DNA of 64,000 nucleotides from IMGVR_UViG_3300009103_000001:1-64000; one strand, 5' to 3'. Counted from the first letter of the stretch, positions 41,178 through 57,817 are shown. Notes: generated by a model from the sequence alone, not told the origin. Program-made: numbers and translations.

Positions 41178-41485
41178 GAAAAATTATAAGAGAAGAAGTG
41201 GATAAATTGGGTTGGATTAAAGACCAAGACCCATTATTTGTGGGTTCTTGTATAACAAAACATTTGCATAAATTACATCCAGAAACACATGGCCCAAATA
41301 GTGAAATATATAAAGAATTTGGACCAACAGATTTAGATTATATAATTGTTGGTGAGAGGGATAATGAAATAATTATTAGACCCAAACCTTTTGACCCAAA
41401 CGATGAAAGACTTTATCTTAGTATCAATAAAAAAGAATTAAGCAATAACATCATTAATAAAAAAATAAGTTTTTGTGAATATTAG
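41168..41485 (+). CDS. Leader-family protein
   Basis: MDLRKIIREEVDKLGWIKD. Confidence 0.78.
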   Translation: MDLRKIIREEVDKLGWIKDQDPLFVGSCITKHLHKLHPETHGPNSEIYKEFGPTDLDYIIVGERDNEIIIRPKPFDPNDERLYLSINKKELSNNIINKKISFCEY

Positions 41486-42167: not shown

Positions 42168-42172
42168 ATATT

Positions 42173-42988
42173 ATGGATATAAAAAGAATCATAAAAGAAG
42201 AAATTGATGACTTTAATTGGATTAAAGAATCTGACCCCATAGAACAATTAGATAATCATTATGGTAATATATTTAATCATCTCCCAAGACAAGAAAATAT
42301 TCCTGAAACAGATTATTATAAAGATGCTATTACACTACATGAACTTTTAAATCAATTAGAAGGGGATTATGATGATTTGTTTAGTTCAACTCTAGCAGAT
42401 ATATGTACATGGGGATTACCAATTCCAAGTCATGAAAAATATAGTTCAGTACCAATAATAAAAAAAATACTTTGTCATGATGATTTTAAGAAACCTGAAA
42501 TTAAAAAGTTATTAAAGGGATATTATAAAAAAAGAATAAAACAACTTAAAAAGTTGTTAGGACAACCATCAAGTACATGGGAAACTATTAAAAGATATAA
42601 TCCTTTTTATTCAAGGATATCTGACGCAATTAGAACCACCAATCAAAATGTAAATGAATCCGATGATTTTGGTTGGGTTGATAACTCTATTGAGGTAGGT
42701 AAATGTTTCATGGTAAACTATCCCATTCCATCGTACTATACTATGGAGGATATTAATCTATTGTTTCAGATGATTAAAATAATTGACATAAAACAAGGTA
42801 AAGAACTTAAGGGTGTTGGTGGAAGAAAATTAATGGATATTCCAAAAGATTCATTTAATGAAAGAGCAGTTAAAATAAAATTCGCTAAAATGAATTATGG
42901 TTCTTGGAGAGATGACTTTGAAATATATTACCCTGAAGTTCAAGACTGGATTGATTGGGGATGGTTAACACCTGTAGAATGTGAATAA
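42173..42988 (+). CDS. Leader-family protein, 2 modules
   Basis: MDIKRIIKEEIDDFNWIKE; VNESDDFGW. Confidence 0.78.
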   Translation: MDIKRIIKEEIDDFNWIKESDPIEQLDNHYGNIFNHLPRQENIPETDYYKDAITLHELLNQLEGDYDDLFSSTLADICTWGLPIPSHEKYSSVPIIKKILCHDDFKKPEIKKLLKGYYKKRIKQLKKLLGQPSSTWETIKRYNPFYSRISDAIRTTNQNVNESDDFGWVDNSIEVGKCFMVNYPIPSYYTMEDINLLFQMIKIIDIKQGKELKGVGGRKLMDIPKDSFNERAVKIKFAKMNYGSWRDDFEIYYPEVQDWIDWGWLTPVECE

Positions 42989-44039
42989 AAACAAGATGTC
43001 AAAGAACTTAAGAAATATAATAAGGGAAGAAATCAAGGATATACAATGGATTAAAGATACTAATCCACTTAAAGAGGGATATTACTATATTGATGCTGAT
43101 GGTTTATCTCGTGAAGAAAGATTAGATTTACAACAAAAAATATTAGACTTAGGTTTTCGTTGGGATGAACGTTACAATATTCCCCATTATACAAGTGATA
43201 ACCTCAACCATATAGCTTTAAATACATTACGAGGTTATGTTTTAAATGGTGTAGACAATAGAATAACCTATACTGTATTGGCTTATCCTCAGTACGCTAA
43301 AAATTGGTTAACGTATTTATCATATAATAATTTTATTAAATTATATAACCAAAATATTAATGAGAATGATGGTAAGGAATGGATAAAAGATGATTTCGAT
43401 TGGGCTGAAAATCCCATAGAAGTGGGCAATTGTTTTACCCTTAAATTCATAACTCACGGTAACCCTATTTTTGTTATAGATAGAATAGAAGAAGATGGTA
43501 GTGATTTAGATTTGTTTGAGGAACGTGTTGTTGTATATTTTAAAATGATAAATTCTTTCACATCCCTAGGTGGGACACAACAGGTCAACAACTATATGGA
43601 TTACACAGGTCCTGCAAGGATTGAACCATTTGAAGCCTCATTTAAACGAGTTGGTGAATTGATTGATAGGGGTATTTTAATACCTGTAGATTGTGGGAAT
43701 AATCTTAATGAATCAAGTGAGTTGGAATGGATTAAAGATGTTAAAATAAGATTGGGAGATGCATGGAAGGCTGGTTTAATTAATGATGGAGATATTTTAA
43801 CTTTATCTGGAGAACTTGCGGATAGTGACGATTTAAGAAGGATAATGGTAACCGATTTTAGAATAAAAATAATTGAAGTTAAAAACAAATTTACTGACTC
43901 TTACTTCGTACCATTAGATGAAAAATACTATGAATATATTGGATACGATAATGAAGAAGTGAGGTTTTATATAACTGATAAAAAATTAGAAATTGTTGAC
44001 CATATCAAAGTACATGATAATTTAAACATTTATGAATAA
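42981..44039 (+). CDS. Leader-family protein, 3 modules
   Basis: MSKNLRNIIREEIKDIQWIKD; INENDGKEWIKD; LNESSELEWIKD. Confidence 0.78.
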   Translation: MNKNKMSKNLRNIIREEIKDIQWIKDTNPLKEGYYYIDADGLSREERLDLQQKILDLGFRWDERYNIPHYTSDNLNHIALNTLRGYVLNGVDNRITYTVLAYPQYAKNWLTYLSYNNFIKLYNQNINENDGKEWIKDDFDWAENPIEVGNCFTLKFITHGNPIFVIDRIEEDGSDLDLFEERVVVYFKMINSFTSLGGTQQVNNYMDYTGPARIEPFEASFKRVGELIDRGILIPVDCGNNLNESSELEWIKDVKIRLGDAWKAGLINDGDILTLSGELADSDDLRRIMVTDFRIKIIEVKNKFTDSYFVPLDEKYYEYIGYDNEEVRFYITDKKLEIVDHIKVHDNLNIYE

Positions 44040-44057
44040 TATTTATAGATAATTAAC

Positions 44058-45806
44058 ATGGATATTAAAAGAATCATAAAGGAAGAAATTAATGACTTCG
44101 ATTGGGCTGAAAACTTAATTAAGGTGGGTAATTGTTTTGCTATAAGGGACCGAAGGGGTGGTGAAATGTCTCTTAAAATAACTAAAATAATGATACATCC
44201 GGCTAAATCCTACCGTAATGAAGACCCCAATATAAAAGATAACTTCAAACATGATGATGTTATTGTAGTATTCAGTGGAAGCAAATCATCATTAGATTGG
44301 TTATCCTATACAGAAGTTGAAAGTTGGCTTAATAGAGGTGTTTTAATCCCTATTGATTGCGAACAACCAAATGATAAAGAATTTTCAATTATTGATGAAA
44401 ATGATGAGATGGAATGGATTAAAGAAAATCCAATAGAGGTGGGAAAATGTTTCTTAGTAAAAAGCTCAATAATTTTTGGTTGGAATGAGCGTAATGACTT
44501 TACAGTTAAAATAATTGATATAGAACAAGATGAAGGTAAATGGGTAGATATTCCAAAAGGTTCCTTTAATGAAGACACCATTAAAATAAAGTTCAATAAT
44601 TACCTTGAGTTATATTATTCTGATTTTCAAGAATGGCTTAATAATGGATGGTTGATACCCACTGATTGTGGAAATAGTATTAATGAATCTGATGACCTAC
44701 AATGGATTAAAGATATAAAACCATCCTTTTATACACTTGTAATAGATTTAGGGGAGAAGATATCTAGAGCTAAATATAGAAAAGTAATGTTGAAATTAGA
44801 TTCAATGGGTTATAAATGGTATCAATTAGCTATGAATGTGAGAGATAAATTATTAGTTAATAGATTTGGTCCAAAACCAATTATACATTTTTACCCTGGA
44901 TTTAGATATCTAATATTAGGCCCAACAGGAGAAATCCCAGAAAAAGAGATAAGTCATACCAACCTTATAAGAAAATATCCATCATTAGATGTAATCCCCG
45001 TTAATGATTTTCTTAGTCAACCCATAAATGAATCCAATGACCTACAATGGATAAAGGATGTAGAAACATCAAAGTTTAGACCAGAGGTGGGTGATTACAT
45101 AGAAGTAAGGAATAAAGGTAGTGAAGAAGCTTATCGTAATTGGTTGGGTTCAGATTTAAGTGAAGCTTATGATGATGGTATCTATGGTTATAACATACAA
45201 GGTGAAGTTATACCCGAAATTCAAAAAGCGATGAGAGGTAAAGGGTTTAATATAATAGAACATAATACGGATGATGTTATTTTTTTTCCTTATCATGAAT
45301 ATATGTTAGAATATGCTGATATCCATGTTGAATTTAAAGATTTAGATTTAGAATATTACCCCATTTCTTACTCTTCTAAGGATATTAATGAATCAGAAGA
45401 AATGGATGACTTTGGTTGGATTAAAGATTCTCAACCAATATCATACGATTTTCTTTTGGGTAAATCTTTATATTTTAACCCATCCATTAGTGACGCTGAA
45501 ACCAATGAATCAATAATGAAATTATTGGAAAGTATAGGTTTTAAACGCTGGGACAGGAACCCAAATACTAACGAAATAGATGATTGGGGTGGTCTATTTA
45601 AGGAAGAAGAAATTATTGGCTTATATTTTAGACCAAGTGATGGACAGGTAATGTTTACAACAGACGATGACTTAGACCCCCACCATGGTAGTGACTTTGA
45701 TGAATATGATTATGAAGAACATCTTCATGGCGCAGTGGAGGACATCAGTTGGATTGAGATTCTTGATGGTTGGCAAGTATTGGGACATTATTTAGGTACT
45801 GTATAA
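44058..45806 (+). CDS. Leader-family protein, 5 modules
   Basis: MDIKRIIKEEINDFDW; IDENDEMEW; INESDDLQW; INESNDLQW; INESEEMDDFGW. Confidence 0.8.
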   Translation: MDIKRIIKEEINDFDWAENLIKVGNCFAIRDRRGGEMSLKITKIMIHPAKSYRNEDPNIKDNFKHDDVIVVFSGSKSSLDWLSYTEVESWLNRGVLIPIDCEQPNDKEFSIIDENDEMEWIKENPIEVGKCFLVKSSIIFGWNERNDFTVKIIDIEQDEGKWVDIPKGSFNEDTIKIKFNNYLELYYSDFQEWLNNGWLIPTDCGNSINESDDLQWIKDIKPSFYTLVIDLGEKISRAKYRKVMLKLDSMGYKWYQLAMNVRDKLLVNRFGPKPIIHFYPGFRYLILGPTGEIPEKEISHTNLIRKYPSLDVIPVNDFLSQPINESNDLQWIKDVETSKFRPEVGDYIEVRNKGSEEAYRNWLGSDLSEAYDDGIYGYNIQGEVIPEIQKAMRGKGFNIIEHNTDDVIFFPYHEYMLEYADIHVEFKDLDLEYYPISYSSKDINESEEMDDFGWIKDSQPISYDFLLGKSLYFNPSISDAETNESIMKLLESIGFKRWDRNPNTNEIDDWGGLFKEEEIIGLYFRPSDGQVMFTTDDDLDPHHGSDFDEYDYEEHLHGAVEDISWIEILDGWQVLGHYLGTV

Positions 45807-46951: not shown

Positions 46952-47038
46952 AATTTTTTTACTAATCCACATATAAATTTAACCCTATTATGAATACTCA
47001 TAACAGGGGCTTTTCTTACAAGAACGATATTTATGATT

Positions 47039-47359
47039 ATGAAACTAAAAAGAATAATAAAAGAATCCATATTAGATAACTGGTTTAGAAAGAATACACT
47101 TAAAACCCTTATAAACAGAAGTGCTTATTCTTATAATATGCATGATGTTATAATTAAAAAAGGTGATGATATAATTATATGGTTAAAACCATTTCCCAAA
47201 AGCAGTTATAGTGAAGAAGACCAACAATATGTATTAAACACAGAAAATGAAACTTTATCAGTATATGGAAGAGGATTAAATAATGAACCTGATTCAATAT
47301 ATAATTTATCAGAAAAAGAATACCATGATATATTCAATAAAATATATCATTTAATATGA
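47039..47359 (+). CDS. Leader-family protein
   Basis: MKLKRIIKES after GATATTTATG. Confidence 0.75.
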   Translation: MKLKRIIKESILDNWFRKNTLKTLINRSAYSYNMHDVIIKKGDDIIIWLKPFPKSSYSEEDQQYVLNTENETLSVYGRGLNNEPDSIYNLSEKEYHDIFNKIYHLI

Positions 47360-47805
47360 ATATAAGAAGAATCATAAGGGAAGAAATGGATAACCATATA
47401 ACCAAAGTTATATTAGATACCATTAATGAATATGATATGGACCCTTATGATATTAATAATGATTTATGTGAAGATTTCACAATGGATGTAATTAATAAAA
47501 TGGGAGGATATAACGATAATTTATATGAATTATCTGATGATATGATTTCTAATTTTAGAGACCCAAAATATGCGTTAGATTACTGGGATGGAGAATTAAT
47601 AGAAACACCTTATGGCGTATGGAGCAAAAATGGGTTAGATAGATATGGATACCCTCCCATTCCTTTAAAAGATATTAAAGAAGAATTTAATCATGTATGG
47701 ATATATTACAATGGAAAACATTATGATGCAGAAGAACCTTATGGAGTTAATAACTGGACCGAATTGCCAATGATTAAAAGACAATTAAACTTATATAATA
47801 TATGA
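47356..47805 (+). CDS. Leader-family protein with papain/transglutaminase-like Cys-His-Asp motif
   Basis: INNDLCEDF...HVWIYYNGKHYDAE; paralog of 56979. Confidence 0.7.
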   Translation: MNIRRIIREEMDNHITKVILDTINEYDMDPYDINNDLCEDFTMDVINKMGGYNDNLYELSDDMISNFRDPKYALDYWDGELIETPYGVWSKNGLDRYGYPPIPLKDIKEEFNHVWIYYNGKHYDAEEPYGVNNWTELPMIKRQLNLYNI

Positions 47806-48806
47806 AATCAACAATAAGAAGAATCATAAGGGAAGAAATGGATGGTCTGGAATGGATTAAAAATGTTCAATCCAATCAGGACATTGCACAAGAGATTGCT
47901 GATGAAACAGAGGTAGATGATAATAAAAGAAAAATATATTTTCCCTTTTCCACCCCTTTCCCTCACTCTCTTTCTTTTTCTCTTCCTTTCTTTTCTTCAC
48001 ATTGTAAAAAAGTATATGGATTAAATGATGATGATATAAAAGATATATGGAAAAGATATAAGAAGATGGTTATGGATAAAATAAATGACCATAATAATCT
48101 TAATGAGAATGATGAATTAAAATGGATAAAAGATGTTCAATCCAATCAGGACATTGCACAGAAAATTGCTGATGAAACAATTATTGACTATGACTATAAA
48201 ATATATGCACCCTCCTTACCCAAATACCCTTTTCCACCTTTCCCACCAAATAAACCAATACGTTCCTTTCATGCTTATTGTGAAGAACAATATGGATTAA
48301 ATGATGATGATATAAAAGATGTATGGAATAGATATAAGAAACTTATTACAGATAAAATTAATGACTATAGGGAAAATTTATTCTCCACTAATGCTTTTAA
48401 TGAATCACCCAATATTAATGAATCCAATGACCTACAATGGATTAAGGATATTAGGTCAATTAAAATAGATGATTGTTTAAAGGTTAGTGGAAACTACACC
48501 TTTTCAAAGGATGATGAAGGAGAAATAACACATTGGCTACATCGTCCATGGACATATATTGTAAAAGATATTAAAAATAACAATTTAGGGGATTATTTAC
48601 TTTTAGAAATTATTTATACTGATTTACCAACTAACCGGAGAAGTACATATTTAATTACAAAATCATTAAAAGAAGTTATAGATGCTATAGAAAGAGGTTA
48701 TTTAAAATTTTGTGATAACCCTAAAAAACGAGATGAGTTTCAAGATGAAATAAATAGTGATTTATATCCTGGTAATATGGGAGATGAAATGTCTGCACCT
48801 AGATAA
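47802..48806 (+). CDS. Leader-family protein, 3 modules (first two duplicated)
   Basis: VQSNQDIAQ.IADET...YGLNDDDIKD.W.RYKK twice. Confidence 0.8.
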   Translation: MKSTIRRIIREEMDGLEWIKNVQSNQDIAQEIADETEVDDNKRKIYFPFSTPFPHSLSFSLPFFSSHCKKVYGLNDDDIKDIWKRYKKMVMDKINDHNNLNENDELKWIKDVQSNQDIAQKIADETIIDYDYKIYAPSLPKYPFPPFPPNKPIRSFHAYCEEQYGLNDDDIKDVWNRYKKLITDKINDYRENLFSTNAFNESPNINESNDLQWIKDIRSIKIDDCLKVSGNYTFSKDDEGEITHWLHRPWTYIVKDIKNNNLGDYLLLEIIYTDLPTNRRSTYLITKSLKEVIDAIERGYLKFCDNPKKRDEFQDEINSDLYPGNMGDEMSAPR

Positions 48807-48815
48807 TATAAAAAA

Positions 48816-49190
48816 ATGAATATAAGAAGAATCATAAGGGAAGAAATAAATGACTTTGATTGGGCTGAAAATCATATAGAGGTTGGGAAATGTTTCAAAA
48901 AACTTTCCAGCAACTACAGAAAAGAAGGGGGTTGGTTAATCGATGAACCTAATGAAAACTATACAGTTAAAATAATTGATATAAAACAAGGTAAAGAACT
49001 TCACAATAAAGGCAAATGGATAGATATCCCTAAAGGTTCATTTGATGAAAGAGCAGTTATAATAAAGTTCGCCAGACCTGAGATGAAGAGAACTGGATAT
49101 ACAAATTGGACAGGTGATATTGAGTTATATTACTCTAATGTTCAAGAATGGCTTAATGATGGGTGGTTAGTGCCTACAGAATGTGAATAA
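48816..49190 (+). CDS. Leader-family protein
   Basis: MNIRRIIREEINDFDWAEN; IEVGKCF module. Confidence 0.78.
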   Translation: MNIRRIIREEINDFDWAENHIEVGKCFKKLSSNYRKEGGWLIDEPNENYTVKIIDIKQGKELHNKGKWIDIPKGSFDERAVIIKFARPEMKRTGYTNWTGDIELYYSNVQEWLNDGWLVPTECE

Positions 49191-49770
49191 AAACAAGATG
49201 TCAAAGAACTTAAGAAATATAGTTAAAAGAATACTGAAAGAATCAGAATTAGATTGGTTCTCAGATATGAATATCGATAAGATAAAAGTGGGTGCTAAAT
49301 TTAACGTCAATGGCTCCTTTACAGGAACTTTTATAATTAATGAGATACTTTGGAATGAGAAGTTTCCTATGCATACTGAGGTTAACTATGAAGGTATTGA
49401 TTATAGTGGTTCCAAATTTAAGAATAGTGTTAGAATTAAAGATTTTTTAAGATGGTTAGACAATGGAATAATAGTACCCATAGAAAGAACACTAAAAGAA
49501 GCAGAATTCGATTGGTTCTCAGATATGAATATAGATAAGATAAAAGTTGGTGCTAAATTTAAATCTGTTAAACATTTGGATTTCCAAACAGGGGATGCAG
49601 GAACTTTTATAATTGATGAGATACTTTGGAATGAGAGGTCTCTTATGCATAGTGCAGTTAAGTATAGTGGTGTTGATTATAGAGGTTTCAAGTTTTTAGA
49701 TTGGGTCATAGTTAAAGATTTTTTAAGATGGTTGGATGATGGAACAATAGTACCTATAGAAGATAAATAG
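49183..49770 (+). CDS. Leader-family protein, 2 duplicated modules
   Basis: LKE(S/A)E.DWFSDMNIDKIKVGAKF twice. Confidence 0.78.
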   Translation: MNKNKMSKNLRNIVKRILKESELDWFSDMNIDKIKVGAKFNVNGSFTGTFIINEILWNEKFPMHTEVNYEGIDYSGSKFKNSVRIKDFLRWLDNGIIVPIERTLKEAEFDWFSDMNIDKIKVGAKFKSVKHLDFQTGDAGTFIIDEILWNERSLMHSAVKYSGVDYRGFKFLDWVIVKDFLRWLDDGTIVPIEDK

Positions 49771-50039
49771 AGACGTTCTACGGTCTTTAAATCAATTAAA
49801 TAATCCCCACTATCATTAGAACATTAAATGTCCTTAAAACCCAGGATTTACAAAACACTACTTTTTATATTATGTGGAAATCGTACATATGGGTAGTAAA
49901 CAAAACCATCGATTAAATGGAGTATTGTGGGATAAAGTGGTAAATTGTGTCCTTTTTACACCTCTTTCACACTGTGGGACCCGACCTTCCCTTAAATTGT
50001 TTGCAAAAATCTGGGGATTTTAGACAAAAAATCAAGGTC

Positions 50040-50109
50040 TGACAAAATGTCATGGTCGATTTCACCAGTACAAAAACCATACCAAAACTATGGGTATGAC
50101 ATAATGTCA
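50040..50109. promoter_or_regulatory. Two TGACA-N3-TGTCA palindromes flanking a conserved spacer
   Basis: TGACAAAATGTCA 50040-50052, TGACATAATGTCA 50097-50109. Confidence 0.6.
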
Positions 50110-50121
50110 TTCAAGTTGGAC

Positions 50122-50358
50122 TTAACTCAATAAACGAGAGTGTATATGTGGTTGTGCAGATAAACCATTCTCTTCAATCTGCCTCCAAAACTCTGGTTCC
50201 CAAATATTCAAAGGCACATTTCGATAAAATTCATGCCATTGGTTCCACAAATGAAATACAGCATTCATGTAATCCATTTCTCTCATTAATTCTCCATTTG
50301 GTGTTACAATTGTATCTTCAATGAAGCAATGTCTATTTATTTCCTTTTTTATTTTCAT
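50122..50358 (-). CDS. Small hypothetical protein
   Basis: ORF track; ATGA overlap. Confidence 0.55.
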   Translation of the reverse strand: MKIKKEINRHCFIEDTIVTPNGELMREMDYMNAVFHLWNQWHEFYRNVPLNIWEPEFWRQIEENGLSAQPHIHSRLLS

Positions 50359-50525
50359 CTTTTAACAATGATTGTATTACCAAACCTATTAGCATGGACC
50401 CACCACTTAATATACTCATCCTTTATAACTGCTGGAGTGTGATGTCTTGTAAGAGTAACCACAAAATAGCCTTCCATTACATTTTTTTTAAAGTTATGTT
50501 TCTTATTTTTCTTTATTATTTTCAT
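50355..50525 (-). CDS. Small protein (56 aa, not in track) sharing its first 21 codons with 55361-55513
   Basis: MKIIKKNKKHNFKKNVMEGYF; ATGA overlaps at both ends. Confidence 0.6.
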   Translation of the reverse strand: MKIIKKNKKHNFKKNVMEGYFVVTLTRHHTPAVIKDEYIKWWVHANRFGNTIIVKR

Positions 50526-50782
50526 AGTATATGATTTTTAATATGTCTCTTTGGCAATAGTTCACGCCCACATTTAAACATACAATAAAATATCATATCA
50601 TCACAACTATCAAAATCTTTATTTAATACTCTTTTTTTATCTTCCTTATTTAATGAGTCATATTCTTTAAGTAAGGAAAAAGTTTTTAAAACTGAGTATC
50701 GTGCATTCCACATTTGAGCTGGTTGGGATGAATAGAATCTAGCGTAGTCACGTGCTAATACTATGTAGTTAGTGCCTTTCAT
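50522..50782 (-). CDS. Small hypothetical protein
   Basis: ORF track. Confidence 0.55.
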   Translation of the reverse strand: MKGTNYIVLARDYARFYSSQPAQMWNARYSVLKTFSLLKEYDSLNKEDKKRVLNKDFDSCDDMIFYCMFKCGRELLPKRHIKNHIL

Positions 50783-50785
50783 GTT

Positions 50786-51118
50786 TTACATCATCCAGTT
50801 AAGTGGTGTTATCTTCTTCCTTACAAACGTGTCTACTTTAACCACGGCTGATGGTGATATAGCATTCCTATGGCCAGTACGAGTAGAATCCAACTCAGGA
50901 CCAGTAATCCATAATCTATCATCTGACCAAGGGTGACCATATTTAACAAAAGGCGAATCCACAAACTCAGTTACCGTGAAAACCTTATCCCTTGCTGGTC
51001 TTGTCATAGTTCTTGTTCCACCACCTTTAACTATTTGTATTTCATAGTTCGTTTCGGGGCGTTTATAATGTACTGTGTCCCCAATCTTTATTTCCGTTCC
51101 GTTCTTATCTTTTACCAT
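50786..51118 (-). CDS. Hypothetical protein
   Basis: MVKDKNGTEIKIGDTV start. Confidence 0.6.
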   Translation of the reverse strand: MVKDKNGTEIKIGDTVHYKRPETNYEIQIVKGGGTRTMTRPARDKVFTVTEFVDSPFVKYGHPWSDDRLWITGPELDSTRTGHRNAISPSAVVKVDTFVRKKITPLNWMM

Positions 51119-51124
51119 CTTATT

Positions 51125-51295
51125 TTATTTTAGCCATACACCATATATAGGAATTTCACTAAGTCTTCCCTTTCTGTATGGGCTTTCAGACTTAACAACG
51201 CAAAGCAATTCTCTTCTTGCTACGTTGTCTTCAGTGTTTATTACCTCACTGTTATACTTTGGATTTCTGCTATTTAGTTTTCTTTTCTTTGCCAT
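51125..51295 (-). CDS. Small basic protein (56 aa, not in track)
   Basis: MAKKRKLNSRNPKY... Confidence 0.6.
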   Translation of the reverse strand: MAKKRKLNSRNPKYNSEVINTEDNVARRELLCVVKSESPYRKGRLSEIPIYGVWLK

Positions 51296-51314
51296 TGTAA
51301 TTAATGTTAAAGGG

Positions 51315-51536
51315 TTAAAATTTGAATTTATATTTTGTGAACTTAACTAATGGGTTGCTCCCCAATGGACATCGATGAACTTGAGGCAAACTAATCACTA
51401 TATCCATTTCCATACAAGGGTTGGTCATTTCTTCTGAAATTTGTCCATACACTGTCATTATTCTATCCATATCATACCAATAGTATTCACCACCACCGAG
51501 TAGTCTTAAACGTCTTTCTGCTTCTGTTTCGTGCAT
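51315..51536 (-). CDS. Small hypothetical protein
   Basis: ORF track; directly below a Bacteroidota promoter. Confidence 0.55.
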   Translation of the reverse strand: MHETEAERRLRLLGGGEYYWYDMDRIMTVYGQISEEMTNPCMEMDIVISLPQVHRCPLGSNPLVKFTKYKFKF

Positions 51537-51554
51537 ATCAATTATTCTTTAATA

Positions 51555-51586
51555 CAAAGATAGTAATAATAATTGAATAAAACAAA
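51555..51586 (-). promoter_or_regulatory. Bacteroidota consensus promoter
   Basis: TTTG-20 nt-TATCTTTG. Confidence 0.75.
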
Positions 51587-51595
51587 TAATGGCAT

Positions 51596-51621
51596 AAAAA
51601 AAGACCTCATCTCTGAGGCCT
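51596..51621 (-). terminator. Intrinsic terminator, copy 1
   Basis: GGCCTCA-GAGA-TGAGGTC followed by T7. Confidence 0.75.
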
Positions 51622-51659
51622 TACAGATTTAGAAACAATCTTATGTTATTGTTATAAAA

Positions 51660-51690
51660 CAAATATAGTGATTATTTTTTTAATGGACAA
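51660..51690 (-). promoter_or_regulatory. Bacteroidota-type promoter
   Basis: TTG-20 nt-TATATTTG. Confidence 0.65.
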
Positions 51691-51701
51691 GCCCTTAGCA
51701 T

Positions 51702-51727
51702 AAAAAAAGACCTCATCTCTGAGGCCT
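51702..51727 (-). terminator. Intrinsic terminator, copy 2 (identical hairpin)
   Basis: GGCCTCA-GAGA-TGAGGTC followed by T7. Confidence 0.75.
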
Positions 51728-51892
51728 AGTTTACTAAATGAGATTTACAATAACAAATTTTATTTAGTAAAGACAAAGAGTAAAAAATGGGTTGCCCCTT
51801 TTTTTATCATAATATAAATATAGTGATTATTTTTTAATAAAACAATAGGCCATGTCAAATATTTTTTTTATCTTTGTTATGTCGTTTAGCTA

Positions 51893-51982
51893 AGGACTGC
51901 AGGTACAGACTCCAGCGCCAAGGAATACTTTAAGACCTTTTTTTTTATAAGGCAGGTGTGGCGCCGATTGCCTCTCACATCC
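51893..51982. ncRNA. Candidate structured (pseudoknot) RNA, family unknown
   Basis: GC-rich; GCGCCA/TGGCGC, AAGG/CCTT and AGGCA/TGCCT pairings; flanked by convergent TATCTTTG boxes. Confidence 0.35.
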
Positions 51983-52036
51983 TTAATACAAAGATACGGC
52001 TTTTATTTTTAACGGCAATGGAATATTTATAAAAAG

Positions 52037-52702
52037 ATGCGTAAATCAATCAAAAAAATATTAAGTGAAAACGAATGGGAATGGGTTAATAAGATAGAAC
52101 CTAAACTAACTAAAGACCTAATCTTATGCTCTAACCATGAAAGGTTTAATCCAGGTTGTATGGAAATACTAAATGTATCGAATAGAATAGTATACACGAA
52201 ATCCTTAGAGACTGGTAACCGTTACGCAGACCCTATAGCAGATGTTATGAGGTGGTTAACTGATGGTGATTATCTACTAATGGATGGAACAGGAGAACTG
52301 GTAATACCATTAAAAGAATCAGATGATATGGACTGGATAAGAGATGTGGACCCAATGGTATCATTCGAAGACATTCATAAGGATAACTACCCACTTAGAA
52401 GAGATAGAACTTTTGACGGCTATGATTTAAAATTTGGTGTGAAGATTAAAAACTTGGATGCTATTATAGAAATGACAATGGATTGTAATGGTGATGAAGG
52501 AGAATGGATTGAGGATATTGCATGGTGTATAGTTGTGAATAGTAGCTACTTAAACCATCAAGATGTATACTGTGTTACCTCTCCAAAATATACATGGGAA
52601 GGACAAAGGGCTTGTTTGGATGTATACTTCTACGATAAAAATAATGTTAACATAGCCGACTACTGGGTATCAGATGATATGATTGAGTTATATTATCTGT
52701 GA
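52037..52702 (+). CDS. Leader-family protein, 2 modules
   Basis: MRKSIKKILSENEWEW; LKESDDMDWIRD. Confidence 0.75.
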   Translation: MRKSIKKILSENEWEWVNKIEPKLTKDLILCSNHERFNPGCMEILNVSNRIVYTKSLETGNRYADPIADVMRWLTDGDYLLMDGTGELVIPLKESDDMDWIRDVDPMVSFEDIHKDNYPLRRDRTFDGYDLKFGVKIKNLDAIIEMTMDCNGDEGEWIEDIAWCIVVNSSYLNHQDVYCVTSPKYTWEGQRACLDVYFYDKNNVNIADYWVSDDMIELYYL

Positions 52703-52849
52703 CAATGTGACAGTTCTATATAGTTTGGTATGATTCTTGTACTGGGCTAACAACTTTAAAAAATAGTATGACAATGTGACAGTTCCATATGGTTTGGTAC
52801 GATTCTTGTACTGGCTAACCACTTTGAGAATATATATGACAAAATGACA
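52700..52849 (+). repeat. Two about 57 bp direct repeats plus a partial third
   Basis: TGACAATGTGACAGTT...TTTGGTA.GATTCTTGTACTGG at 52700 and 52769; TGACAAAATGACA at 52837. Confidence 0.85.
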
Positions 52850-52859
52850 GACATTTTAG

Positions 52860-52960
52860 CCCTATGGGGCTCCCCCCTGGGGTCCCCCCCGTGGGCGCGT
52901 ATCCCCCCTCCCCGGTATGGCAAGGGTTGCCACAACCAGGGGTCGGTTCCGTTTGCACAC
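52860..52960. other. GC-rich island with four minus-strand G-runs
   Basis: 46 of 60 bases G+C in 52861-52920 within an AT-rich genome. Confidence 0.8.
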
Positions 52961-53142
52961 CTAAATCCTGTAAATCCCAGAAAAAATATGGGCGCTTTTT
53001 TTTTCAGAAAAGCGACTAAAAAATGCCCAGAAAAATTTTTACTAAAAAAGGGGTCTATCTCAATGCACAGTAAGACAAATAAAATAGACTTATAAGTAAT
53101 ACCCAAATGAAAAGAATTTCATATAAATACTTTTCAGTAAAA

Positions 53143-53328
53143 TCATTTAATTTTTTCATCTTTTTTTGGTTTATTACAATGTGAATCGTTCAACCCCAGT
53201 TTCTCAATAATACTACCAGCACATAAACCTATAACAAACGCAAACCCTGTTGTGACACTTATCTTAAATCCTAACAAAATTACACCCACACCTATAATGT
53301 TAAATAATATATTTCCTATTTTACTCAT
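53143..53328 (-). CDS. Cassette: small membrane protein
   Basis: Starts and ends in junction repeats; two TM. Confidence 0.65.
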   Translation of the reverse strand: MSKIGNILFNIIGVGVILLGFKISVTTGFAFVIGLCAGSIIEKLGLNDSHCNKPKKDEKIK

Positions 53329-53455
53329 CTTTGTTTTGGTTTAAGTAATATAATTCGACTATTTCTTCAGGTGTTAGTTCCATCATTGTATCTGTGCAAT
53401 AAGGTGCGTCTTCTTGAATCCATCGAATAAATTTTATCATTTCTTCTTTACTCAT
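53321..53455 (-). CDS. Cassette: small protein ending LNQNKDE
   Basis: Start MSKEEM in junction (track 53503). Confidence 0.6.
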   Translation of the reverse strand: MSKEEMIKFIRWIQEDAPYCTDTMMELTPEEIVELYYLNQNKDE

Positions 53456-53670
53456 CTTTGGTTTAGTTTTTCGATTAAATAATCTTTCAATCCTTCTATC
53501 CAAGTGGGAATCATATCATAATACTGGTGTGCTGAAGGGGTAAAAGTCATATTACGATTATCTTCATAGTATTGATATTTATCTTTTAGTTCTTGAATTT
53601 TAAGCTTAACATCTTCAGTGGTTGAAACCTTTATCATGCTTACTATTTCTTTCTTAATTATTTCACTCAT
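53452..53670 (-). CDS. Cassette: small protein
   Basis: Junction-bounded. Confidence 0.65.
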   Translation of the reverse strand: MSEIIKKEIVSMIKVSTTEDVKLKIQELKDKYQYYEDNRNMTFTPSAHQYYDMIPTWIEGLKDYLIEKLNQR

Positions 53671-53682
53671 CTTCTTTTTGGT

Positions 53683-53811
53683 TTATCTAGTTTCATAATA
53701 ACCTTTGCTTTTGTAATTCACATTTTTGTCTTTTCCAATGTAAAACAAGAACCATATAATGGTAATAAGAAAAAACAATTTGAGTATGAATCCAATATCA
53801 ATTCTTCTCAT
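53683..53811 (-). CDS. Cassette: 42 aa membrane peptide (not in track)
   Basis: MRRIDIGFILKLFFLITIIWFLFYIG... Confidence 0.55.
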   Translation of the reverse strand: MRRIDIGFILKLFFLITIIWFLFYIGKDKNVNYKSKGYYETR

Positions 53812-54098
53812 CTTTGTTTTGGTTTAATATAATCGTATCTAATATGTAAAGCACATGCCTTTGAGTCACCTACAATATCACCAATAGGTTGTATATCGTA
53901 CAGATATATTCCTTCAATATCTTTATATACAGGATTTGATTTCATATAATCCTTTTTACGATTCCACCATTCATTAAAAGTTTCATTTAGTTTCGTACCT
54001 TCAGCCCTAACACACCAATTTGGGTATTCGCCGTTTATACATTGTTTATTCAATGTTGTATCGTGTTGTAGGGGGTTATCTACTTTAATTACTTTCAT
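53808..54098 (-). CDS. Cassette: hypothetical protein ending KPKQR
   Basis: Junction-bounded. Confidence 0.65.
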   Translation of the reverse strand: MKVIKVDNPLQHDTTLNKQCINGEYPNWCVRAEGTKLNETFNEWWNRKKDYMKSNPVYKDIEGIYLYDIQPIGDIVGDSKACALHIRYDYIKPKQR

Positions 54099-54110
54099 CT
54101 TTGTTTTGGT

Positions 54111-54248
54111 TTAATCTTTTGACATCATATAAAATAATAACATATAGATTGCCATTAATATAGAGCCATTGGATTGTCCAACACACATAAAGTAAGTCGA
54201 AGCAATCATTGCAGCAATACTAAAATATCTCCATTTACCTTTATTCAT
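54111..54248 (-). CDS. Cassette: 45 aa membrane peptide (not in track)
   Basis: MNKGKWRYFSIAAMIAST... Confidence 0.55.
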   Translation of the reverse strand: MNKGKWRYFSIAAMIASTYFMCVGQSNGSILMAIYMLLFYMMSKD

Positions 54249-54260
54249 CTTTGTTTTGGT

Positions 54261-54467
54261 TTAATGACCCCACTTTTTATTAAATTCTTTGTCTGTTCGA
54301 AGTTTTTCTAAAAATTCATCTTCTGAATAAACGGAATGACTCTTCGATGGAAATGGTGTTTTTAATTCTACTTCTTTTAACCATTTATTATCCATCATAT
54401 CCACATTATCCATATATTTTCTCCATAGTGGATTTTCGTCTTTTGGGTTTGTTTTATACATAATCAT
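54261..54467 (-). CDS. Cassette: small protein
   Basis: Stop is the first TAA of the junction. Confidence 0.65.
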   Translation of the reverse strand: MIMYKTNPKDENPLWRKYMDNVDMMDNKWLKEVELKTPFPSKSHSVYSEDEFLEKLRTDKEFNKKWGH

Positions 54468-54631
54468 CTTTGTTTTGGTTTTAATTCAATGTACTTATTA
54501 AATTGTCTTTTATATTCATTCCACTCTTCATCTGTTGGCGGTGTTTCCCTATCTAACCAACTTTTGATATCAATCTCCAACTTTAATCTGAGGTTGTTTA
54601 TCGCTTTATCAATTCCTGTATCAATCATCAT
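54464..54631 (-). CDS. Cassette: 55 aa protein (not in track)
   Basis: MMIDTGIDKA...KPKQR. Confidence 0.6.
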   Translation of the reverse strand: MMIDTGIDKAINNLRLKLEIDIKSWLDRETPPTDEEWNEYKRQFNKYIELKPKQR

Positions 54632-54636
54632 CTTTG

Positions 54637-54783
54637 TTATGTGTAATATTCATATCCCATCATACGCTCATTATCATCCAATCTCTTTTGGAGTTCTTTC
54701 TTTAACTTTTTGTTCTTGGTTTTACTTATAGCTCTTTTTAAACTATTGTTACTGTTCTTAAGTTGTTTAATAAGTCCTTTCAT
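54637..54783 (-). CDS. Cassette: 48 aa basic protein (not in track)
   Basis: MKGLIKQLKN... Confidence 0.55.
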   Translation of the reverse strand: MKGLIKQLKNSNNSLKRAISKTKNKKLKKELQKRLDDNERMMGYEYYT

Positions 54784-54798
54784 CTTCTTTGTTTTGTT

Positions 54799-55062
54799 TT
54801 AAACTTTTAATTCAATCATTTCACATATCATATCAAACTGTTCCATGTTGTTACATTTACCATTATATTTAACTGAGTAATTTGGACCATCTTGATTAAA
54901 CCCTTTATCGGTTGTTGTTATAGTAACTTTACCGTTTAATACGGTTAGGAAAGCTCCTTGTCCATCATCTTCCCAAACATTACCCTTTTGATATTTGTCT
55001 TCGTTTAACCATTGGCTCATCCATCTCCATCCTTTTTCTTCTAATTCTTCTCTAGTCATCAT
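54799..55062 (-). CDS. Cassette: hypothetical protein
   Basis: Junction-bounded. Confidence 0.65.
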   Translation of the reverse strand: MMTREELEEKGWRWMSQWLNEDKYQKGNVWEDDGQGAFLTVLNGKVTITTTDKGFNQDGPNYSVKYNGKCNNMEQFDMICEMIELKV

Positions 55063-55246
55063 CTTTGTTTTGGTTTAATATACCTCTGCCTACACCTTCC
55101 TCTATCATAAACAATTGTTGCCAAAGTGCTATAGCAGTTTCTGTATCTCCGGATTCTTTTATCTTCATTATTTCATTGTCCATTTCAACAAAATCTTCTT
55201 TAGTCTTGCATTGAAATAGTCTTTCTAATATTTCTTCTTTACTCAT
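55052..55246 (-). CDS. Cassette: small protein ending LNQNKDDD
   Basis: First gene below promoter 55262-55290. Confidence 0.65.
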   Translation of the reverse strand: MSKEEILERLFQCKTKEDFVEMDNEIMKIKESGDTETAIALWQQLFMIEEGVGRGILNQNKDDD

Positions 55247-55261
55247 CTTTGTTTTGGTTTA

Positions 55262-55290
55262 AATATAAGTAATACATTTTAGATTATCAA
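55262..55290 (-). promoter_or_regulatory. Sigma70-like promoter abutting a junction repeat
   Basis: TTGATA-17 nt-TATATT. Confidence 0.6.
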
Positions 55291-55301
55291 TAAAAAAAAT
55301 G

Positions 55302-55341
55302 GCGGCTTAAGAAAAATCCCCCCTACCCCCCTTTTTTATTT
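55302..55341 (+). repeat. About 40 bp G/C-run element, copy 2
   Basis: GCGGCTTAAGAAAAATCCCCCCTACCCCCCTTTTTTATTT. Confidence 0.75.
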
Positions 55342-55360
55342 CTATTTTTATCTAATTCTT

Positions 55361-55513
55361 TTAACTATGATTGTCAAAAATTATTGGTTCAGTACCATCA
55401 TGAATATTGCCAAGTTTTATGTAAAATGTGGCTTTTGAAAGAGTAAACATAAAATAGCCTTCCATCACATCTTTTTTAAAGTTATGTTTCTTATTTTTCT
55501 TTATTATTTTCAT
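55361..55513 (-). CDS. Cassette: 50 aa protein (not in track)
   Basis: Shares 63 bp (2 mismatches) with 50463-50525. Confidence 0.6.
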   Translation of the reverse strand: MKIIKKNKKHNFKKDVMEGYFMFTLSKATFYIKLGNIHDGTEPIIFDNHS

Positions 55514-55656
55514 CTTTGTTTTGGTTGTTCTCTATACAATTCTTCTAACCGTTTCTTATGTGATTTAACATACTTTCTATTTAAGTCTAATAATGTCATC
55601 TTATATCTATAGTCTTTATCCGTTAGATATCTCCATATATGTTTAATAAATCTCAT
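55510..55656 (-). CDS. Cassette: 48 aa protein (not in track)
   Basis: MRFIKHIWRY...QPKQR. Confidence 0.55.
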   Translation of the reverse strand: MRFIKHIWRYLTDKDYRYKMTLLDLNRKYVKSHKKRLEELYREQPKQR

Positions 55657-55849
55657 CTTTGTTTTGGTTTTTAATATCCAACACCCATTCCATTAAATCA
55701 ATCATACTACATTGTGTTCTGAATTGTTCTCTTTTTTCAGATATACCCCACAAACCTCCATTTGGTGGATTATTTAAGAAATGAGTTAATTCATCTTTAT
55801 GTTCATTCATTTCTATTAACTTGTTATATATTTCTTCTCTGCTTTTCAT
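55643..55849 (-). CDS. Cassette: small protein ending NQNKDEIY
   Basis: Junction-bounded. Confidence 0.65.
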   Translation of the reverse strand: MKSREEIYNKLIEMNEHKDELTHFLNNPPNGGLWGISEKREQFRTQCSMIDLMEWVLDIKNQNKDEIY

Positions 55850-55965
55850 CTTCTTTTTGGTTTTTCATATTATAATTAATGTATATATTATTACAGAACA
55901 AGCAATTAATATTCCTATAATATGTAACCCCTTCTGTAACTTATTTAATTTATTCCAATCCTCTC

Positions 55966-56151
55966 TCATCTTTGTTTTAATTTAATTAATTTATCACACA
56001 ACCTATATTGTTCTTCCTGTATATAATGTTTGATTAATTCATCTATATCATTATTTGTATATTCTATTTTACCCAATCTAATATCTAGAAATTTAAAATT
56101 CATTTCTATATTTCTCTTAACAGTTTTAAATCTATTACTAAGTTCACTCAT
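55966..56151 (-). CDS. Cassette: small protein ending KLKQR
   Basis: Junction-bounded. Confidence 0.6.
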   Translation of the reverse strand: MSELSNRFKTVKRNIEMNFKFLDIRLGKIEYTNNDIDELIKHYIQEEQYRLCDKLIKLKQR

Positions 56152-56307
56152 CTGTATGTGCTTTGTCTATTCCTGTGTCAATCATCTTTGTAGAGTTTTA
56201 TTAAATCTTTAATAATGTAATACCCTGCCATTAAAAAAGAGAATATTGCTATCCCATAAAATATTAATCCTATTATACCTATTATTTTAATCATGTTCAT
56301 CTTTGTT

Positions 56308-56811
56308 TTAATTTTTTTTCCATCCACAATCACAATGATTGGCAATACCTAACATATCGTCTTTTTCCCAACCAAGTTCCTTTAATACTTTCATTTGGGT
56401 TTCTTCATCTCTATCCATACCAAATAGGTCTTTACATCCATTGTATTTCCTACTCCAACAGTTTGGTTTGTGTGATGCTTTAATATCTCCCCATTTTTTT
56501 AATTTGGTTTCATACATAATAAAACCTGGAAGATGGCCTATTACCCACCACTCTTTACAACCATTGTATTCATCGTTCCAATCATACATTGCCATTAAAT
56601 CCATCTTATAATAATTCTCATCATCTCTAGATAAGTTTTCATTAATATCGACAGAGACTGCATAAGAATGAAATTTTGGGTTTTCTGAAAACCTTTTAAC
56701 AAAGGGTATCTCTAAAACTTGGTCGAAGGTGTCTACTTCATACTCACTATCTTCAAAACCTGAAAAATAATTTGGTCTTCTTTCTATAAATTTCTTTTTA
56801 CTCATCTTCAT
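56308..56811 (-). CDS. Cassette: hypothetical protein with Cys/His motifs
   Basis: Junction-bounded; HKPNC...C...HCDC. Confidence 0.65.
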   Translation of the reverse strand: MKMSKKKFIERRPNYFSGFEDSEYEVDTFDQVLEIPFVKRFSENPKFHSYAVSVDINENLSRDDENYYKMDLMAMYDWNDEYNGCKEWWVIGHLPGFIMYETKLKKWGDIKASHKPNCWSRKYNGCKDLFGMDRDEETQMKVLKELGWEKDDMLGIANHCDCGWKKN

Positions 56812-56978
56812 TTTAATTTATATACAATGGTCCACAATGGGTGAATCATTTGTATTAGTTAAATTTCTTATTAGTTTAACATCATCTTTAATAATGTGTG
56901 TAGTACCATCGGTATATAAGATTTCTACAATACCATCTTCAATTGTAACTTCTTTAATGTTATCTAAATTAAACTCTC

Positions 56979-57272
56979 TCATCTTCGTTTTGATTTTAAA
57001 TTTCTTTTAGCTAAAGGTAATTCCGTCCAGTTATCAACTCCATTAGGTACTTCAGAATCATAATGTTTCCCATTATAATAAACCCAACAATGAGTTATTT
57101 CATCATCAACAGATACTAATGGAATACACTTTTCATCACTTATACCTTTCATCTTATTAATAACAGTCGTAGCAAACTCACCACATAAACCATTGTTAAT
57201 ATCATAAGGACTATAGTTTATTTTTTTATATTTGTTAATAGTATCTAATATAACCTCTGTTATGTTACTCAT
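56979..57272 (-). CDS. Cassette: papain/transglutaminase-like Cys-His-Asp protein
   Basis: INNGLCGEFA...HCWVYYNGKHYDSE; paralog of 47356 without the leader. Confidence 0.7.
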   Translation of the reverse strand: MSNITEVILDTINKYKKINYSPYDINNGLCGEFATTVINKMKGISDEKCIPLVSVDDEITHCWVYYNGKHYDSEVPNGVDNWTELPLAKRNLKSKRR

Positions 57273-57304
57273 CTTCTTTTGGTTTATTTATATGTTACAA
57301 ACAA

Positions 57305-57538
57305 TTAAAATAAGATTAATGGGTATTCATTCAGATATAGCCCATATATAAACAACCCTATTGATGTAAAAAGCAGTAGCCAAAACCTTCTTTTAGGGGC
57401 TGTTCCCTGTTCAATTTCTATAAACCCCCATAACATTTTTTTTCTACTAGACCATTTCTCTTCATACGTGGCTATGTTTAACACAATGCTAAATATTAGG
57501 AGTATTACCACTACTGCTTTTAATTCAAATCCTACCAT
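57305..57538 (-). CDS. Cassette: two-TM membrane protein
   Basis: Hydrophobic segments. Confidence 0.6.
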   Translation of the reverse strand: MVGFELKAVVVILLIFSIVLNIATYEEKWSSRKKMLWGFIEIEQGTAPKRRFWLLLFTSIGLFIYGLYLNEYPLILF

Positions 57539-57773
57539 CTTCTTTTATTTTTTTTAATTCAATACATTTTTCGAAATCGTTCTTTTCTGCGAAGTAATCT
57601 AATATTAAATCAAAGTCAATATCATTTAAATCTTTGCGTATATCATGAGCTACCCATATTTCTTCTTCATTGGTATCAATTAATTCGTCAAATGTATTCT
57701 TACCTGTTAGTATTTTATAAGAATTAATCATAGATAATTCAATAAATTTATCATTAGATACTATTTTACTCAT
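57525..57773 (-). CDS. Cassette: first gene of the array
   Basis: MSK start in junction; YF.EK..FEKC.EL motif. Confidence 0.65.
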   Translation of the reverse strand: MSKIVSNDKFIELSMINSYKILTGKNTFDELIDTNEEEIWVAHDIRKDLNDIDFDLILDYFAEKNDFEKCIELKKIKEDGRI

Positions 57774-57788: not shown

Positions 57789-57817
57789 AAAATAAGTAAT
57801 ATATTGGATATTATCAA
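57789..57817 (-). promoter_or_regulatory. Sigma70-like promoter heading the cassette array
   Basis: TTGATA-17 nt-TATTTT; near copy of 55262-55290. Confidence 0.55.

Follow-up and report, generated by a model that had tools for sequence, protein, structure and literature searches.

Two copies of one enzyme in two gene architectures

The window analysed here comprises the first 64,000 nt (bases 1-64000) of a 210,157-b linear IMG/VR virus record, IMGVR_UViG_3300009103_000001, which has a CheckV completeness of 64% and a G+C content of about 29%, and which was read with genetic code table 11 throughout. It contains two copies of a small enzyme with a Cys-His-Asp triad and a predicted papain/transglutaminase-like domain. 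The long copy (47356..47805, plus strand, 149 aa) consists of a short N-terminal leader, the enzyme domain and a 47-aa insert; the short copy (56979..57272, minus strand, 97 aa) has the same domain with neither leader nor insert. The long copy is the second gene of a plus-strand operon of five consecutive leader-bearing genes (47039..49770, with starts at 47039, 47356, 47802, 48816 and 49198), and its ATG overlaps the upstream stop codon; the short copy comes third in an array on the minus strand (53143..57773), whose roughly 20 small genes encode 40-167 aa.

The two copies are true paralogs. In particular, BLASTP aligns them with 53 identities (E = 5e-29), and they are the sole copies detected when the whole record is searched in six frames. 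Three motifs are present in both, IT(K/E)VILDTIN, PYDINN.LC..F and H.W.YYNGKHYD.E.P.GV.NWTELP, and the short copy, whose start MSN-ITEVIL aligns to the long copy from residue 13 on, has no counterpart of the 10-12 residue leader MNIRRIIREE(MD). A preliminary description of this DNA had claimed that the same enzyme occurs in two systems, with and without the leader; the present analysis bears out both open reading frames with their coordinates and strands, the three motifs, the missing leader, and the placement of the two genes in different architectures. The alignment of the two copies in that description also stands, but it left unmentioned the 47-residue insert at residues 58-104 of the long copy (47527..47667), between the Cys helix and the His strand, which forms one single gap in the alignment and is found in most members of the family. 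Overall, the observation is confirmed and the interpretation is supported in part.

Sequence family and predicted fold of the enzyme

A word search found six relatives of the enzyme, and a profile built from these six, run against 1.84 billion representatives clustered at 50% identity, returned 1558 clusters at E <= 1e-3 and 375 clusters at E <= 1e-10. Judged by these clusters, the family is large, mainly seen in phages, and without a Pfam model; Pfam gives no family at threshold for either copy or for 123 aligned relatives. The sole significant PHROGs match is phrog_6870 (unknown function, E = 3e-8), obtained with the short copy only, and a PDB sequence-profile search gave nothing relevant. 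Two candidate families were set aside. A Peptidase_C97 match (E = 0.066) lies below threshold and was rejected because the His precedes the Cys in that family; a Tox-PL-2 lead from an Atlas feature search (score 0.84) was unconfirmed, as its hidden Markov model finds nothing in the genome at E <= 10 and matches none of the 123 relatives.

Across the 123-sequence alignment, the columns conserved in at least 90% of members read I-N-x-G-x-C-x-x-F, H-x-W, Y-D-x-E, G-V and L. They include the triad (Cys38/His113/Asp124 in the long copy, Cys30/His61/Asp72 in the short copy), an Asn four residues before the Cys and a Glu two residues after the Asp. The predicted nucleophile Cys38 is encoded at 47467..47469, and the segment from His113 (47692-47694) to Asp124 (47725-47727) is a predicted beta-hairpin (47692..47727, plus strand) that carries the other two triad residues in the motif H-x-W-I-Y-Y-N-G-K-H-Y-D-A-E; in the short copy, Cys30, His61 and Asp72 are encoded on the minus strand at 57183-57185, 57090-57092 and 57057-57059.

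Family members are of three kinds: insert-bearing long forms (about 140-165 aa), short forms lacking the insert (about 90-120 aa) and fusion proteins. Short homologs from other samples are 97% (P0001) and 82% (P0002) identical to the short copy and keep both its architecture and its triad, and an IMG/VR search for close relatives of the short copy yielded nothing nearer than distant homologs of the long form, from phages of 363 kb and 676 kb. Nucleus-forming jumbo phages of Pseudomonas and Vibrio encode weak homologs (201phi2-1 gp345, Phabio, RVTF4, pTD1 and Psa21 gp029); the homology in Psa21 gp029, which is annotated as a phosphatase, lies in its N-terminal half, and 201phi2-1 gp345 has no virion-protein label in its record, where its neighbour gp338 has one. 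Among the fusion proteins, three homologs carry a GNAT domain (P0020, P0096 and P0134), two give weak, sub-threshold ART-PolyVal matches (P0134 and P0074), and P0009 is fused to a cyanophycin-synthase N-terminal domain. The N-termini also vary: 42 of the 123 members start within six residues of the domain, and about 50 have extensions of 9-28 residues, with MKYLKLFEE (T4-like), IRKIIKE and ITESQ as recurring types. The presence or absence of a leader is therefore a recurring polymorphism of the enzyme family.

AlphaFold2 models built with the 123-row alignment have predicted local distance difference test (pLDDT) scores of 96.7 (long copy) and 86.6 (short copy). In the models the Cys lies at the N-terminus of a helix (Cys38 opens helix 38-48, Cys30 opens helix 30-44), His113 (His61) leads into strand 114-118, and Asp124 (Asp72) follows strand 121-123, the two strands being adjacent in a hairpin. 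Such a placement of the three residues is a hallmark of papain/transglutaminase-like enzymes. An exhaustive structural alignment places a protein-glutaminase first (8z3i, Z = 5.7, 88 of 97 residues, 3.0 Å), with LapG (4fgo, Z = 5.6-5.7) and arylamine N-acetyltransferase (NAT, Z = 5.3-5.6) also among the best structural neighbours, which overall span Z = 5.2-5.7. The next matches are the MOA/PSL protease domain, TglA, SpvD, vasohibin, Ceg10, Tse1 and PeiW/PeiP, followed by SseI, Cif, factor XIII, TG3 and the PMT C3 domain. Of the top 50 structural matches, about two thirds belong to the papain/transglutaminase-like superfamily and have the same triad order, which makes this fold likely for both modelled copies. 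The chemistry is likely a thiol-dependent modification of a cytoplasmic host protein, for example by deamidation, proteolysis or acyl transfer.

Several results count against this fold assignment. Foldseek finds no PDB match at E <= 0.001, a shape search of the ESM Atlas gives template modelling (TM) scores that are all below 0.5, the Z-scores fall below 7-8, a level that unrelated models often reach by the aligner's own note, and the absence of any Pfam match extends to the relatives. The preliminary description had proposed both that the C...H...D order fits this fold and that Foldseek would be a check on it; the first proposal agrees with the placement of the triad in high-confidence models and with the best structural neighbours, and the second gave a mixed answer, since Foldseek itself finds nothing in the PDB at its threshold while the exhaustive aligner ranks Cys-His-Asp enzymes first, at modest Z.

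The same structural matches bear on an alternative in which the domain hydrolyses cell wall, as NlpC/P60 or CHAP enzymes do; the long copy would then be a virion-associated lysin used for entry, the short copy an endolysin, and the protein encoded at 57305-57538 its holin. NlpC/P60-type structures are indeed matched (Tse1 at Z = 4.2, PeiW/PeiP at Z = 3.9-4.0, with MepS and a Thermus endopeptidase weakly in Foldseek), and a 77-aa protein with two hydrophobic stretches is encoded directly upstream of the short copy in an array with other small hydrophobic proteins. However, better structural scores go to cytoplasmic or protein-directed enzymes (protein-glutaminase, NAT, LapG and SpvD), neither Pfam NLPC_P60 nor CHAP matches either copy or any of the 123 relatives, and the triad is Cys-His-Asp with an extra conserved Glu. 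Moreover, none of the 20 fusion proteins scanned contains a cell-wall-binding domain, the partners being GNAT, the weak ART-PolyVal matches and the cyanophycin-synthase N-terminal domain. These fusion partners, together with the lack of a wall-binding module in the 20 fusions, favour a protein-modifying effector over a lysin, which we consider improbable.

A leader peptide on about 30 proteins

The leader of the long copy, MNIRRIIREE (47356..47385, plus strand, 10 aa), is one instance of an amphipathic, 10-residue consensus, M-x-I-[RK]-[RK]-I-I-[RK]-E-E, that begins about 30 proteins. When 267 predicted proteins were scanned with the pattern [IVLM][RKN][RKN][IVL][IVL][RKSN][ED], it occurred 30 times within the first 25 residues versus 0.16 times in shuffled proteins; elsewhere in the proteins it matched once, at residue 29, versus 0.95 in shuffles. 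The window holds 24 leader bearers, almost all on the plus strand, including the five-gene operon of the long copy and further genes at 38925..45806 (plus strand), several of which are built of modules of about 100 aa. The leader codons vary synonymously, and genes inside operons, with an ATG that overlaps the preceding stop codon (47356, 47802, 8961 and 15006), have the leader too; both points suggest that selection acts on the leader peptide and not on the RNA.

Outside the window, the record encodes a gp21-like prohead protease (104290-105018; Peptidase_S77, PF03420, E = 3e-26) and a gp23-like major capsid protein (110065-111888; PF07068, E = 2.5e-63), and the leader motif is found on most genes between them (105015, 105627, 106011, 107461 and 107805) and on two just downstream of the capsid gene (115360 and 115739). 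Core and scaffold genes of T4 sit in this same interval between protease and capsid genes. The head-module leader genes begin MKKIIKLNENDIENLVKKIIKE[DE]-like or MGLIRKIIKEE, and in the head-module genes the motif is placed at residues 16-22 instead of at the 5′ end. Further, the leader ends in I-[RK]-E, with I-R-E-E in the long copy, which resembles the T4-type I-x-E pattern, and the capsid protein has A-I-R-E at residue 23 and L-I-N-E at residue 60, ahead of a Gp23 domain that starts at about residue 70; these sites recall the gp23 propeptide. In T4, head propeptides of 10-20 residues are cut after Glu, with cut sites such as ITE-6 and LTE-619 of Alt and LIE-9 of gp21 (PMC5694885, PMC9026906), and the IPII and IPIII leader MKTYQEFIAE has 10 aa and ends in I-x-E (PMC9026906).

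The T4-type protease and capsid genes, the motif in the head module, the I-[RK]-E end and the sites in the capsid protein together tie the leader to the head, and a T4-type capsid-targeting propeptide is a plausible reading of it, the predicted cut falling after Glu9 (I-R-E) or Glu10. The packaging role that the preliminary description gave to the leader thus gains circumstantial support from the gp21-type protease, the gp23-type capsid protein, the motif on most genes between them and the terminal I-x-E. Two observations speak against it. The leader has in common with the T4 leaders only its length, its amphipathic character and the terminal I-x-E, and AlphaFold2 runs it into one continuous helix with the domain (residues 3-26), by which it could be simply structural.

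A second repeated element concerns the multi-module leader proteins. The junction motif [LI]-[NK]-E-S-x-D-[FLM]-x-W-[IV]-K-D has 43 matches versus 2.3 expected, and it recurs about every 100 residues, preceding each module of about 100 aa. Proteins with such junctions are encoded in the window at 38925-41177, 42996-44039, 44058-45806, 47802-48806, 49198-49770 and 52037-52702, and elsewhere in the record at 66725-68785 and 112748-113842. Each junction is a predicted protease site and module start, and the multi-module leader proteins look like cargo polyproteins with a putative T4-type protease site at every junction.

The genes that carry the leader also have a characteristic upstream motif. 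The sequence (G)ATATTTAT precedes leader genes, 3-18 nt before the ATG and without a Shine-Dalgarno sequence; in all, it lies within 45 nt upstream of 50 predicted genes, in spacing classes of 3-8 nt and 12-18 nt, with examples at 57841-57849 and 61398-61406. In the operon of the long copy, the promoter-like form GATATTTAT (47026-47034, plus strand) ends 4 nt before the first ATG. The spacing class of 3-8 nt points to leaderless or nearly leaderless mRNAs.

This spacing also bears on a different role, in which the leader is a shared N-terminal helix unconnected with packaging and both enzyme copies act in the cytoplasm during infection. The leader could then serve as a translation-initiation enhancer for leaderless or near-leaderless mRNAs, as a docking helix for cytoplasmic assembly or a chaperone, or as a tag for degradation or localisation. 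Of the leader genes with ATATTTAT, about half have the motif only 3-8 nt before the ATG and no Shine-Dalgarno sequence, which would make the 5′ coding region the ribosome landing site; the leader codons are A-rich, the modelled leader is continuous with the first helix of the domain, and the phage encodes a DnaK homolog. However, the leader is maintained at the peptide level while its codons vary and is found on operon-internal genes, the head-module genes have the motif at residues 16-22, away from the 5′ end, and the leader always ends in [LI]-x-E in a phage that has a gp21-type protease and in which [LI]-x-E recurs at the module junctions. A role without packaging is accordingly unlikely, and a capsid-targeting propeptide is the preferred reading of the leader.

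Expression signals of the array and of the leader genes

Fifteen of the genes in the minus-strand array have a near-identical start region, AAACCAAAACAAAG-ATG-A, and a sixteenth gene with it lies on the minus strand at 46167. These sixteen start regions have at most two mismatches to the consensus; elsewhere in the 210-kb record there is only one match with three mismatches, at 110065. The array element consists of a 14-nt A/C-rich translation-start region and the first codons (ATG AGT AAA), and because of the common start AAACCAAAACAAAG-ATG-AGT-AAA many array genes begin MSK, MSN or MSE; since the element overlaps the 3′ ends of the upstream open reading frames, these often end KPKQR*. The short copy has the variant AAACCAAAAGAAG-ATG-AGT (57273..57290, minus strand) of the consensus AAACCAAAACAAAG-ATG-AGT, so its first two codons (M-S) belong to the array element, and its domain begins exactly where a leader-trimmed long copy would begin.

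A sigma-70-like promoter, TTGATA-17 nt-TATTTT (57789..57817, minus strand), precedes the array head at 57773, and a near-identical copy at 55262-55290 precedes the gene that starts at 55246; the two heads have in common a block of about 50 nt with TTGATA, 17 nt and TAT(A/T)TT. The ATATTTAT motif is found nowhere in the array of the short copy. It does occur before the prohead protease gene (104290), before genes on either side of the tail sheath and before further large virion-block genes (183567, 185254, 195458 and 199944). By these motifs, the leader genes and the array genes use different expression signals, and the sigma-70-like promoters of the array suggest early expression by the host polymerase. 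On this basis we infer an 'early' class of array genes and a 'late' class of leader genes.

Three results qualify so sharp a division. Sigma-70-like hexamers are not enriched in this AT-rich DNA (112 found versus 121 expected from shuffles), so the array promoters are credible because of the conservation of about 50 nt between the two heads and nothing else. Further, ATATTTAT also stands before genes of the replication block (148612 and 152231) and therefore marks phage-specific rather than strictly late transcription. Finally, no T4 gp55-like late sigma factor was found in the record, which is uninformative because the record is 64% complete and the phage is distant.

Other features lie within or beside these gene groups. 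A 36-nt G-rich element (AAAAAAGGGGGGTAGGGGGGATTTTTCTTAAGCCGC) occurs at 46916-46951 and 55302-55337 in inverted orientation; read in the direction of transcription, each copy comes shortly before an operon head, at 47039 for the leader operon and at 55246 for the array. The pair brackets 8.4 kb that include the long copy, and the element could have a regulatory role or delimit a segment that inverts or moves. Immediately upstream of the short copy, the 77-aa protein encoded at 57305-57538 (minus strand), with two hydrophobic stretches that are predicted transmembrane helices, is holin-like in size and shape. Two small array genes on the minus strand, at 50355-50525 and 55361-55513, are paralogous and begin MKIIKKNKKHNFKK(N/D)VMEGYF, and duplication between minus-strand arrays is thus not unique to the enzyme.

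Direction of the architectural change

The preliminary description suggested that domains move between an early cassette pool and the packaged pool by gaining a leader; the phylogeny favours the opposite direction. In a maximum-likelihood tree of 77 family members, which was built from few columns and leaves many forks unresolved, the long copy and a short clade (the short copy, P0001 and P0002) form one group with a Shimodaira-Hasegawa approximate likelihood-ratio test (SH-aLRT) support of 95. Its nearest neighbours are P0004, P0005, P0018 and P0073: P0004 and P0005 contain the insert, P0004 and P0018 have IRKIIKE-like leaders, and P0018 and P0073 are possibly fragments. Loss is more parsimonious than gain because the clade of the two copies is nested among long, insert-bearing and mostly N-terminally extended relatives. 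By this comparison of sequences, a duplication within the lineage was probably followed by loss of the leader and the insert in the copy that entered the array.

With such losses, the short copy could be a decaying or non-catalytic remnant, for example a decoy, a regulator or a leftover of recombination. It has lost a 47-residue subdomain, the confidence of its model falls at the scar (mean pLDDT of 62 and 74 at residues 41-60), and the stem branch of its lineage is longer (0.59 versus 0.36). However, its open reading frame is intact and keeps every near-invariant residue of the family, it has a proper array start region, its homologs elsewhere at 97% and 82% identity retain the short architecture and the triad, and many family members, including those of chimalliviruses, are also without the insert. 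A remnant is therefore improbable, and a functional enzyme remains the preferred reading of the short copy.

Proposed course of events and known phage systems

A papain-like enzyme pair, with a packaged leader copy and an unpackaged array copy, is the best explanation of these data, and as a whole it has about an even chance of being correct. In this scheme, synthesis of the long copy would coincide with that of the head proteins and of about 30 other leader-bearing proteins. The leader would dock it onto the prohead core, as the T4 capsid-targeting sequence (CTS) does, and the gp21-like protease would cut the leader at the I-x-E site, after Glu9 or Glu10. The mature long copy would then be ejected with the DNA, and its action on a host protein would precede all phage gene expression. 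The short copy would have arisen by duplication of the leader-bearing long form, with the leader replaced by the start region of the array and the insert lost; it would be transcribed from the sigma-70-like promoters and act inside the cell, unpackaged, where the missing insert possibly gives it a different specificity.

The closest parallel is the family of ADP-ribosyltransferases in phage T4. According to two papers (PMC5512222, PMC5694885), Alt, which has a short propeptide at its N-terminus, becomes part of the head contents, undergoes cleavage by gp21 behind a Glu and enters the host with the injected DNA; its paralogs ModA and ModB are not injected. As with Alt and ModA/ModB, one enzyme family would here be deployed twice by one phage, and gp21- and gp23-type head genes are present in both phages. 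The differences are that the domain is of the predicted Cys-His-Asp papain-like type instead of an ADP-ribosyltransferase, that the unpackaged copy has also lost an internal subdomain of 47 residues, and that the pair is known from sequence alone.

The leader is comparable to the T4 CTS of IPI, IPII and IPIII, which is also a 10-residue, N-terminal, amphipathic leader that ends in I-x-E and is common to otherwise unrelated proteins. Unlike the CTS, it has the basic motif I-[RK]-[RK]-I-I-[RK]-E-E, is present on about 30 proteins of one phage and is often followed by D-F-D-W-[IV]-K-D; in the multi-module proteins, the [LI]-x-E and DFxWIKD context is repeated at intervals of about 100 aa. We know of no T4 counterpart to this repeated [LI]-x-E/DFxWIKD junction. 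The T4 CTS has itself been proposed as an evolutionary device that loads varied proteins into the head (PMC9026906).

In its triad order and placement, the enzyme resembles the Cys-His-Asp superfamily that includes protein-glutaminase, LapG/BTLCP, NAT, SpvD, SseI/PMT C3 and Cif. It differs from these in having no detectable sequence-profile relationship to any Pfam member, a far smaller core of about 95 residues, and its own signature of I-N-N-G-x-C-x-x-F and H-x-W-x-Y-x-G-K-H-Y-D-x-E. Moreover, GNAT and ART-PolyVal are among the domain types of injected multi-effector polyvalent proteins described by Iyer et al. (2017, PMC5512222). Some members of the present family approach such proteins through their GNAT fusions and weak ART-PolyVal matches, whereas both copies in the window are stand-alone, single-domain proteins; a description of the enzyme domain was not found in the passages of Iyer et al. 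that were searched. The array, with its small variable genes and repeated regulatory element, is reminiscent of PeSL and other mobile regulatory cassettes in the hyperplastic regions of T4-type phages (PMC2839356, PMC4122927), and by analogy its repeated element could mediate modular shuffling. In contrast to PeSL, which places a promoter and stem-loop between every gene, the array has a start-region repeat and promoters at its heads only.

The theme is a known one, CTS-tagged head cargo and dual deployment of the Alt/Mod type; here it involves the large, unannotated family of minimal papain-like enzymes and an unusually extensive system of leaders and junctions. A bolder and rather doubtful reading is that a new capsid-loading system exists, in which the basic 10-residue leader and the [LI]-x-E/D-F-x-W-I-K-D junctions load about 30 proteins, some of them polyproteins destined for cleavage by the prohead protease into modules of about 100 aa. 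Genes would then pass between this cargo pool and a host-transcribed early array merely by exchanging the leader for the 14-nt array start, and the enzyme pair would be the first such transfer to be caught and the founder of a new, mainly phage-borne family of minimal papain-like effectors.

If the leader is a capsid-targeting signal, sequence alone predicts about 30 injected proteins of an uncultured jumbo phage and supplies a ready list of candidate first-strike effectors against the host or its defences. Labelling the family as minimal Cys-His-Asp papain-like enzymes also assigns many hypothetical proteins a function that can be tested, among them proteins of well-studied nucleus-forming Pseudomonas phages such as 201phi2-1 gp345. 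The paralog pair would be a natural experiment in which one activity is re-deployed at two stages of infection, comparable to T4 Alt and ModA/ModB, and so short and portable a leader could serve as a packaging tag for the engineering of T4-like phages.

Genomic setting and additional features

By its gene content, the record represents an uncultured jumbo myovirus with T4-type head morphogenesis. Besides the head genes, it encodes a tail sheath (180711-183494), virion proteins (163973-172897) and a DNA polymerase (149223-152141), and the window encodes a thymidylate synthase. A nucleotide search of phage records with 47000-50000 gave no match, and an Rfam scan of the window gave no hits. The homologs in 201phi2-1, Phabio and Psa21 led us to consider a nucleus-forming chimallivirus, an identity that was set aside as the head genes are of T4 type (chimallin was not searched for).

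Additional features of the window lie apart from the enzyme genes. At 52701-52836 lies a tandem duplication of 68 nt, and the DNA from there to 53010 has C- and G-runs and an unusually high G+C content; no convincing open reading frame and no Rfam match were found in 52701-53010, and the element could be a non-coding RNA or origin-like. At 18911-19030, the sequence GCGGGTGTAGCTTAATATAAAGAGCG comes after a perfect match to the sigma-70 consensus (TTGACA, 17 nt, TATAAT) and resembles the 5′ half of a tRNA; ARAGORN detects no tRNA in the window, and the Rfam match for this region is at chance level only. A 984-aa protein (12055-15009) contains Pfam GP88 (E = 3.5e-33) and mycobacteriophage L5 gp82 (E = 2.2e-27) domains, and it has a leader-like N-terminus if its start is a TTG codon. 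Finally, the full-length DnaK/Hsp70 homolog (21510-23366) is 58-63% identical to those of uncultured megaphages of 630-735 kb (LR745206, LR756502 and LR756501).

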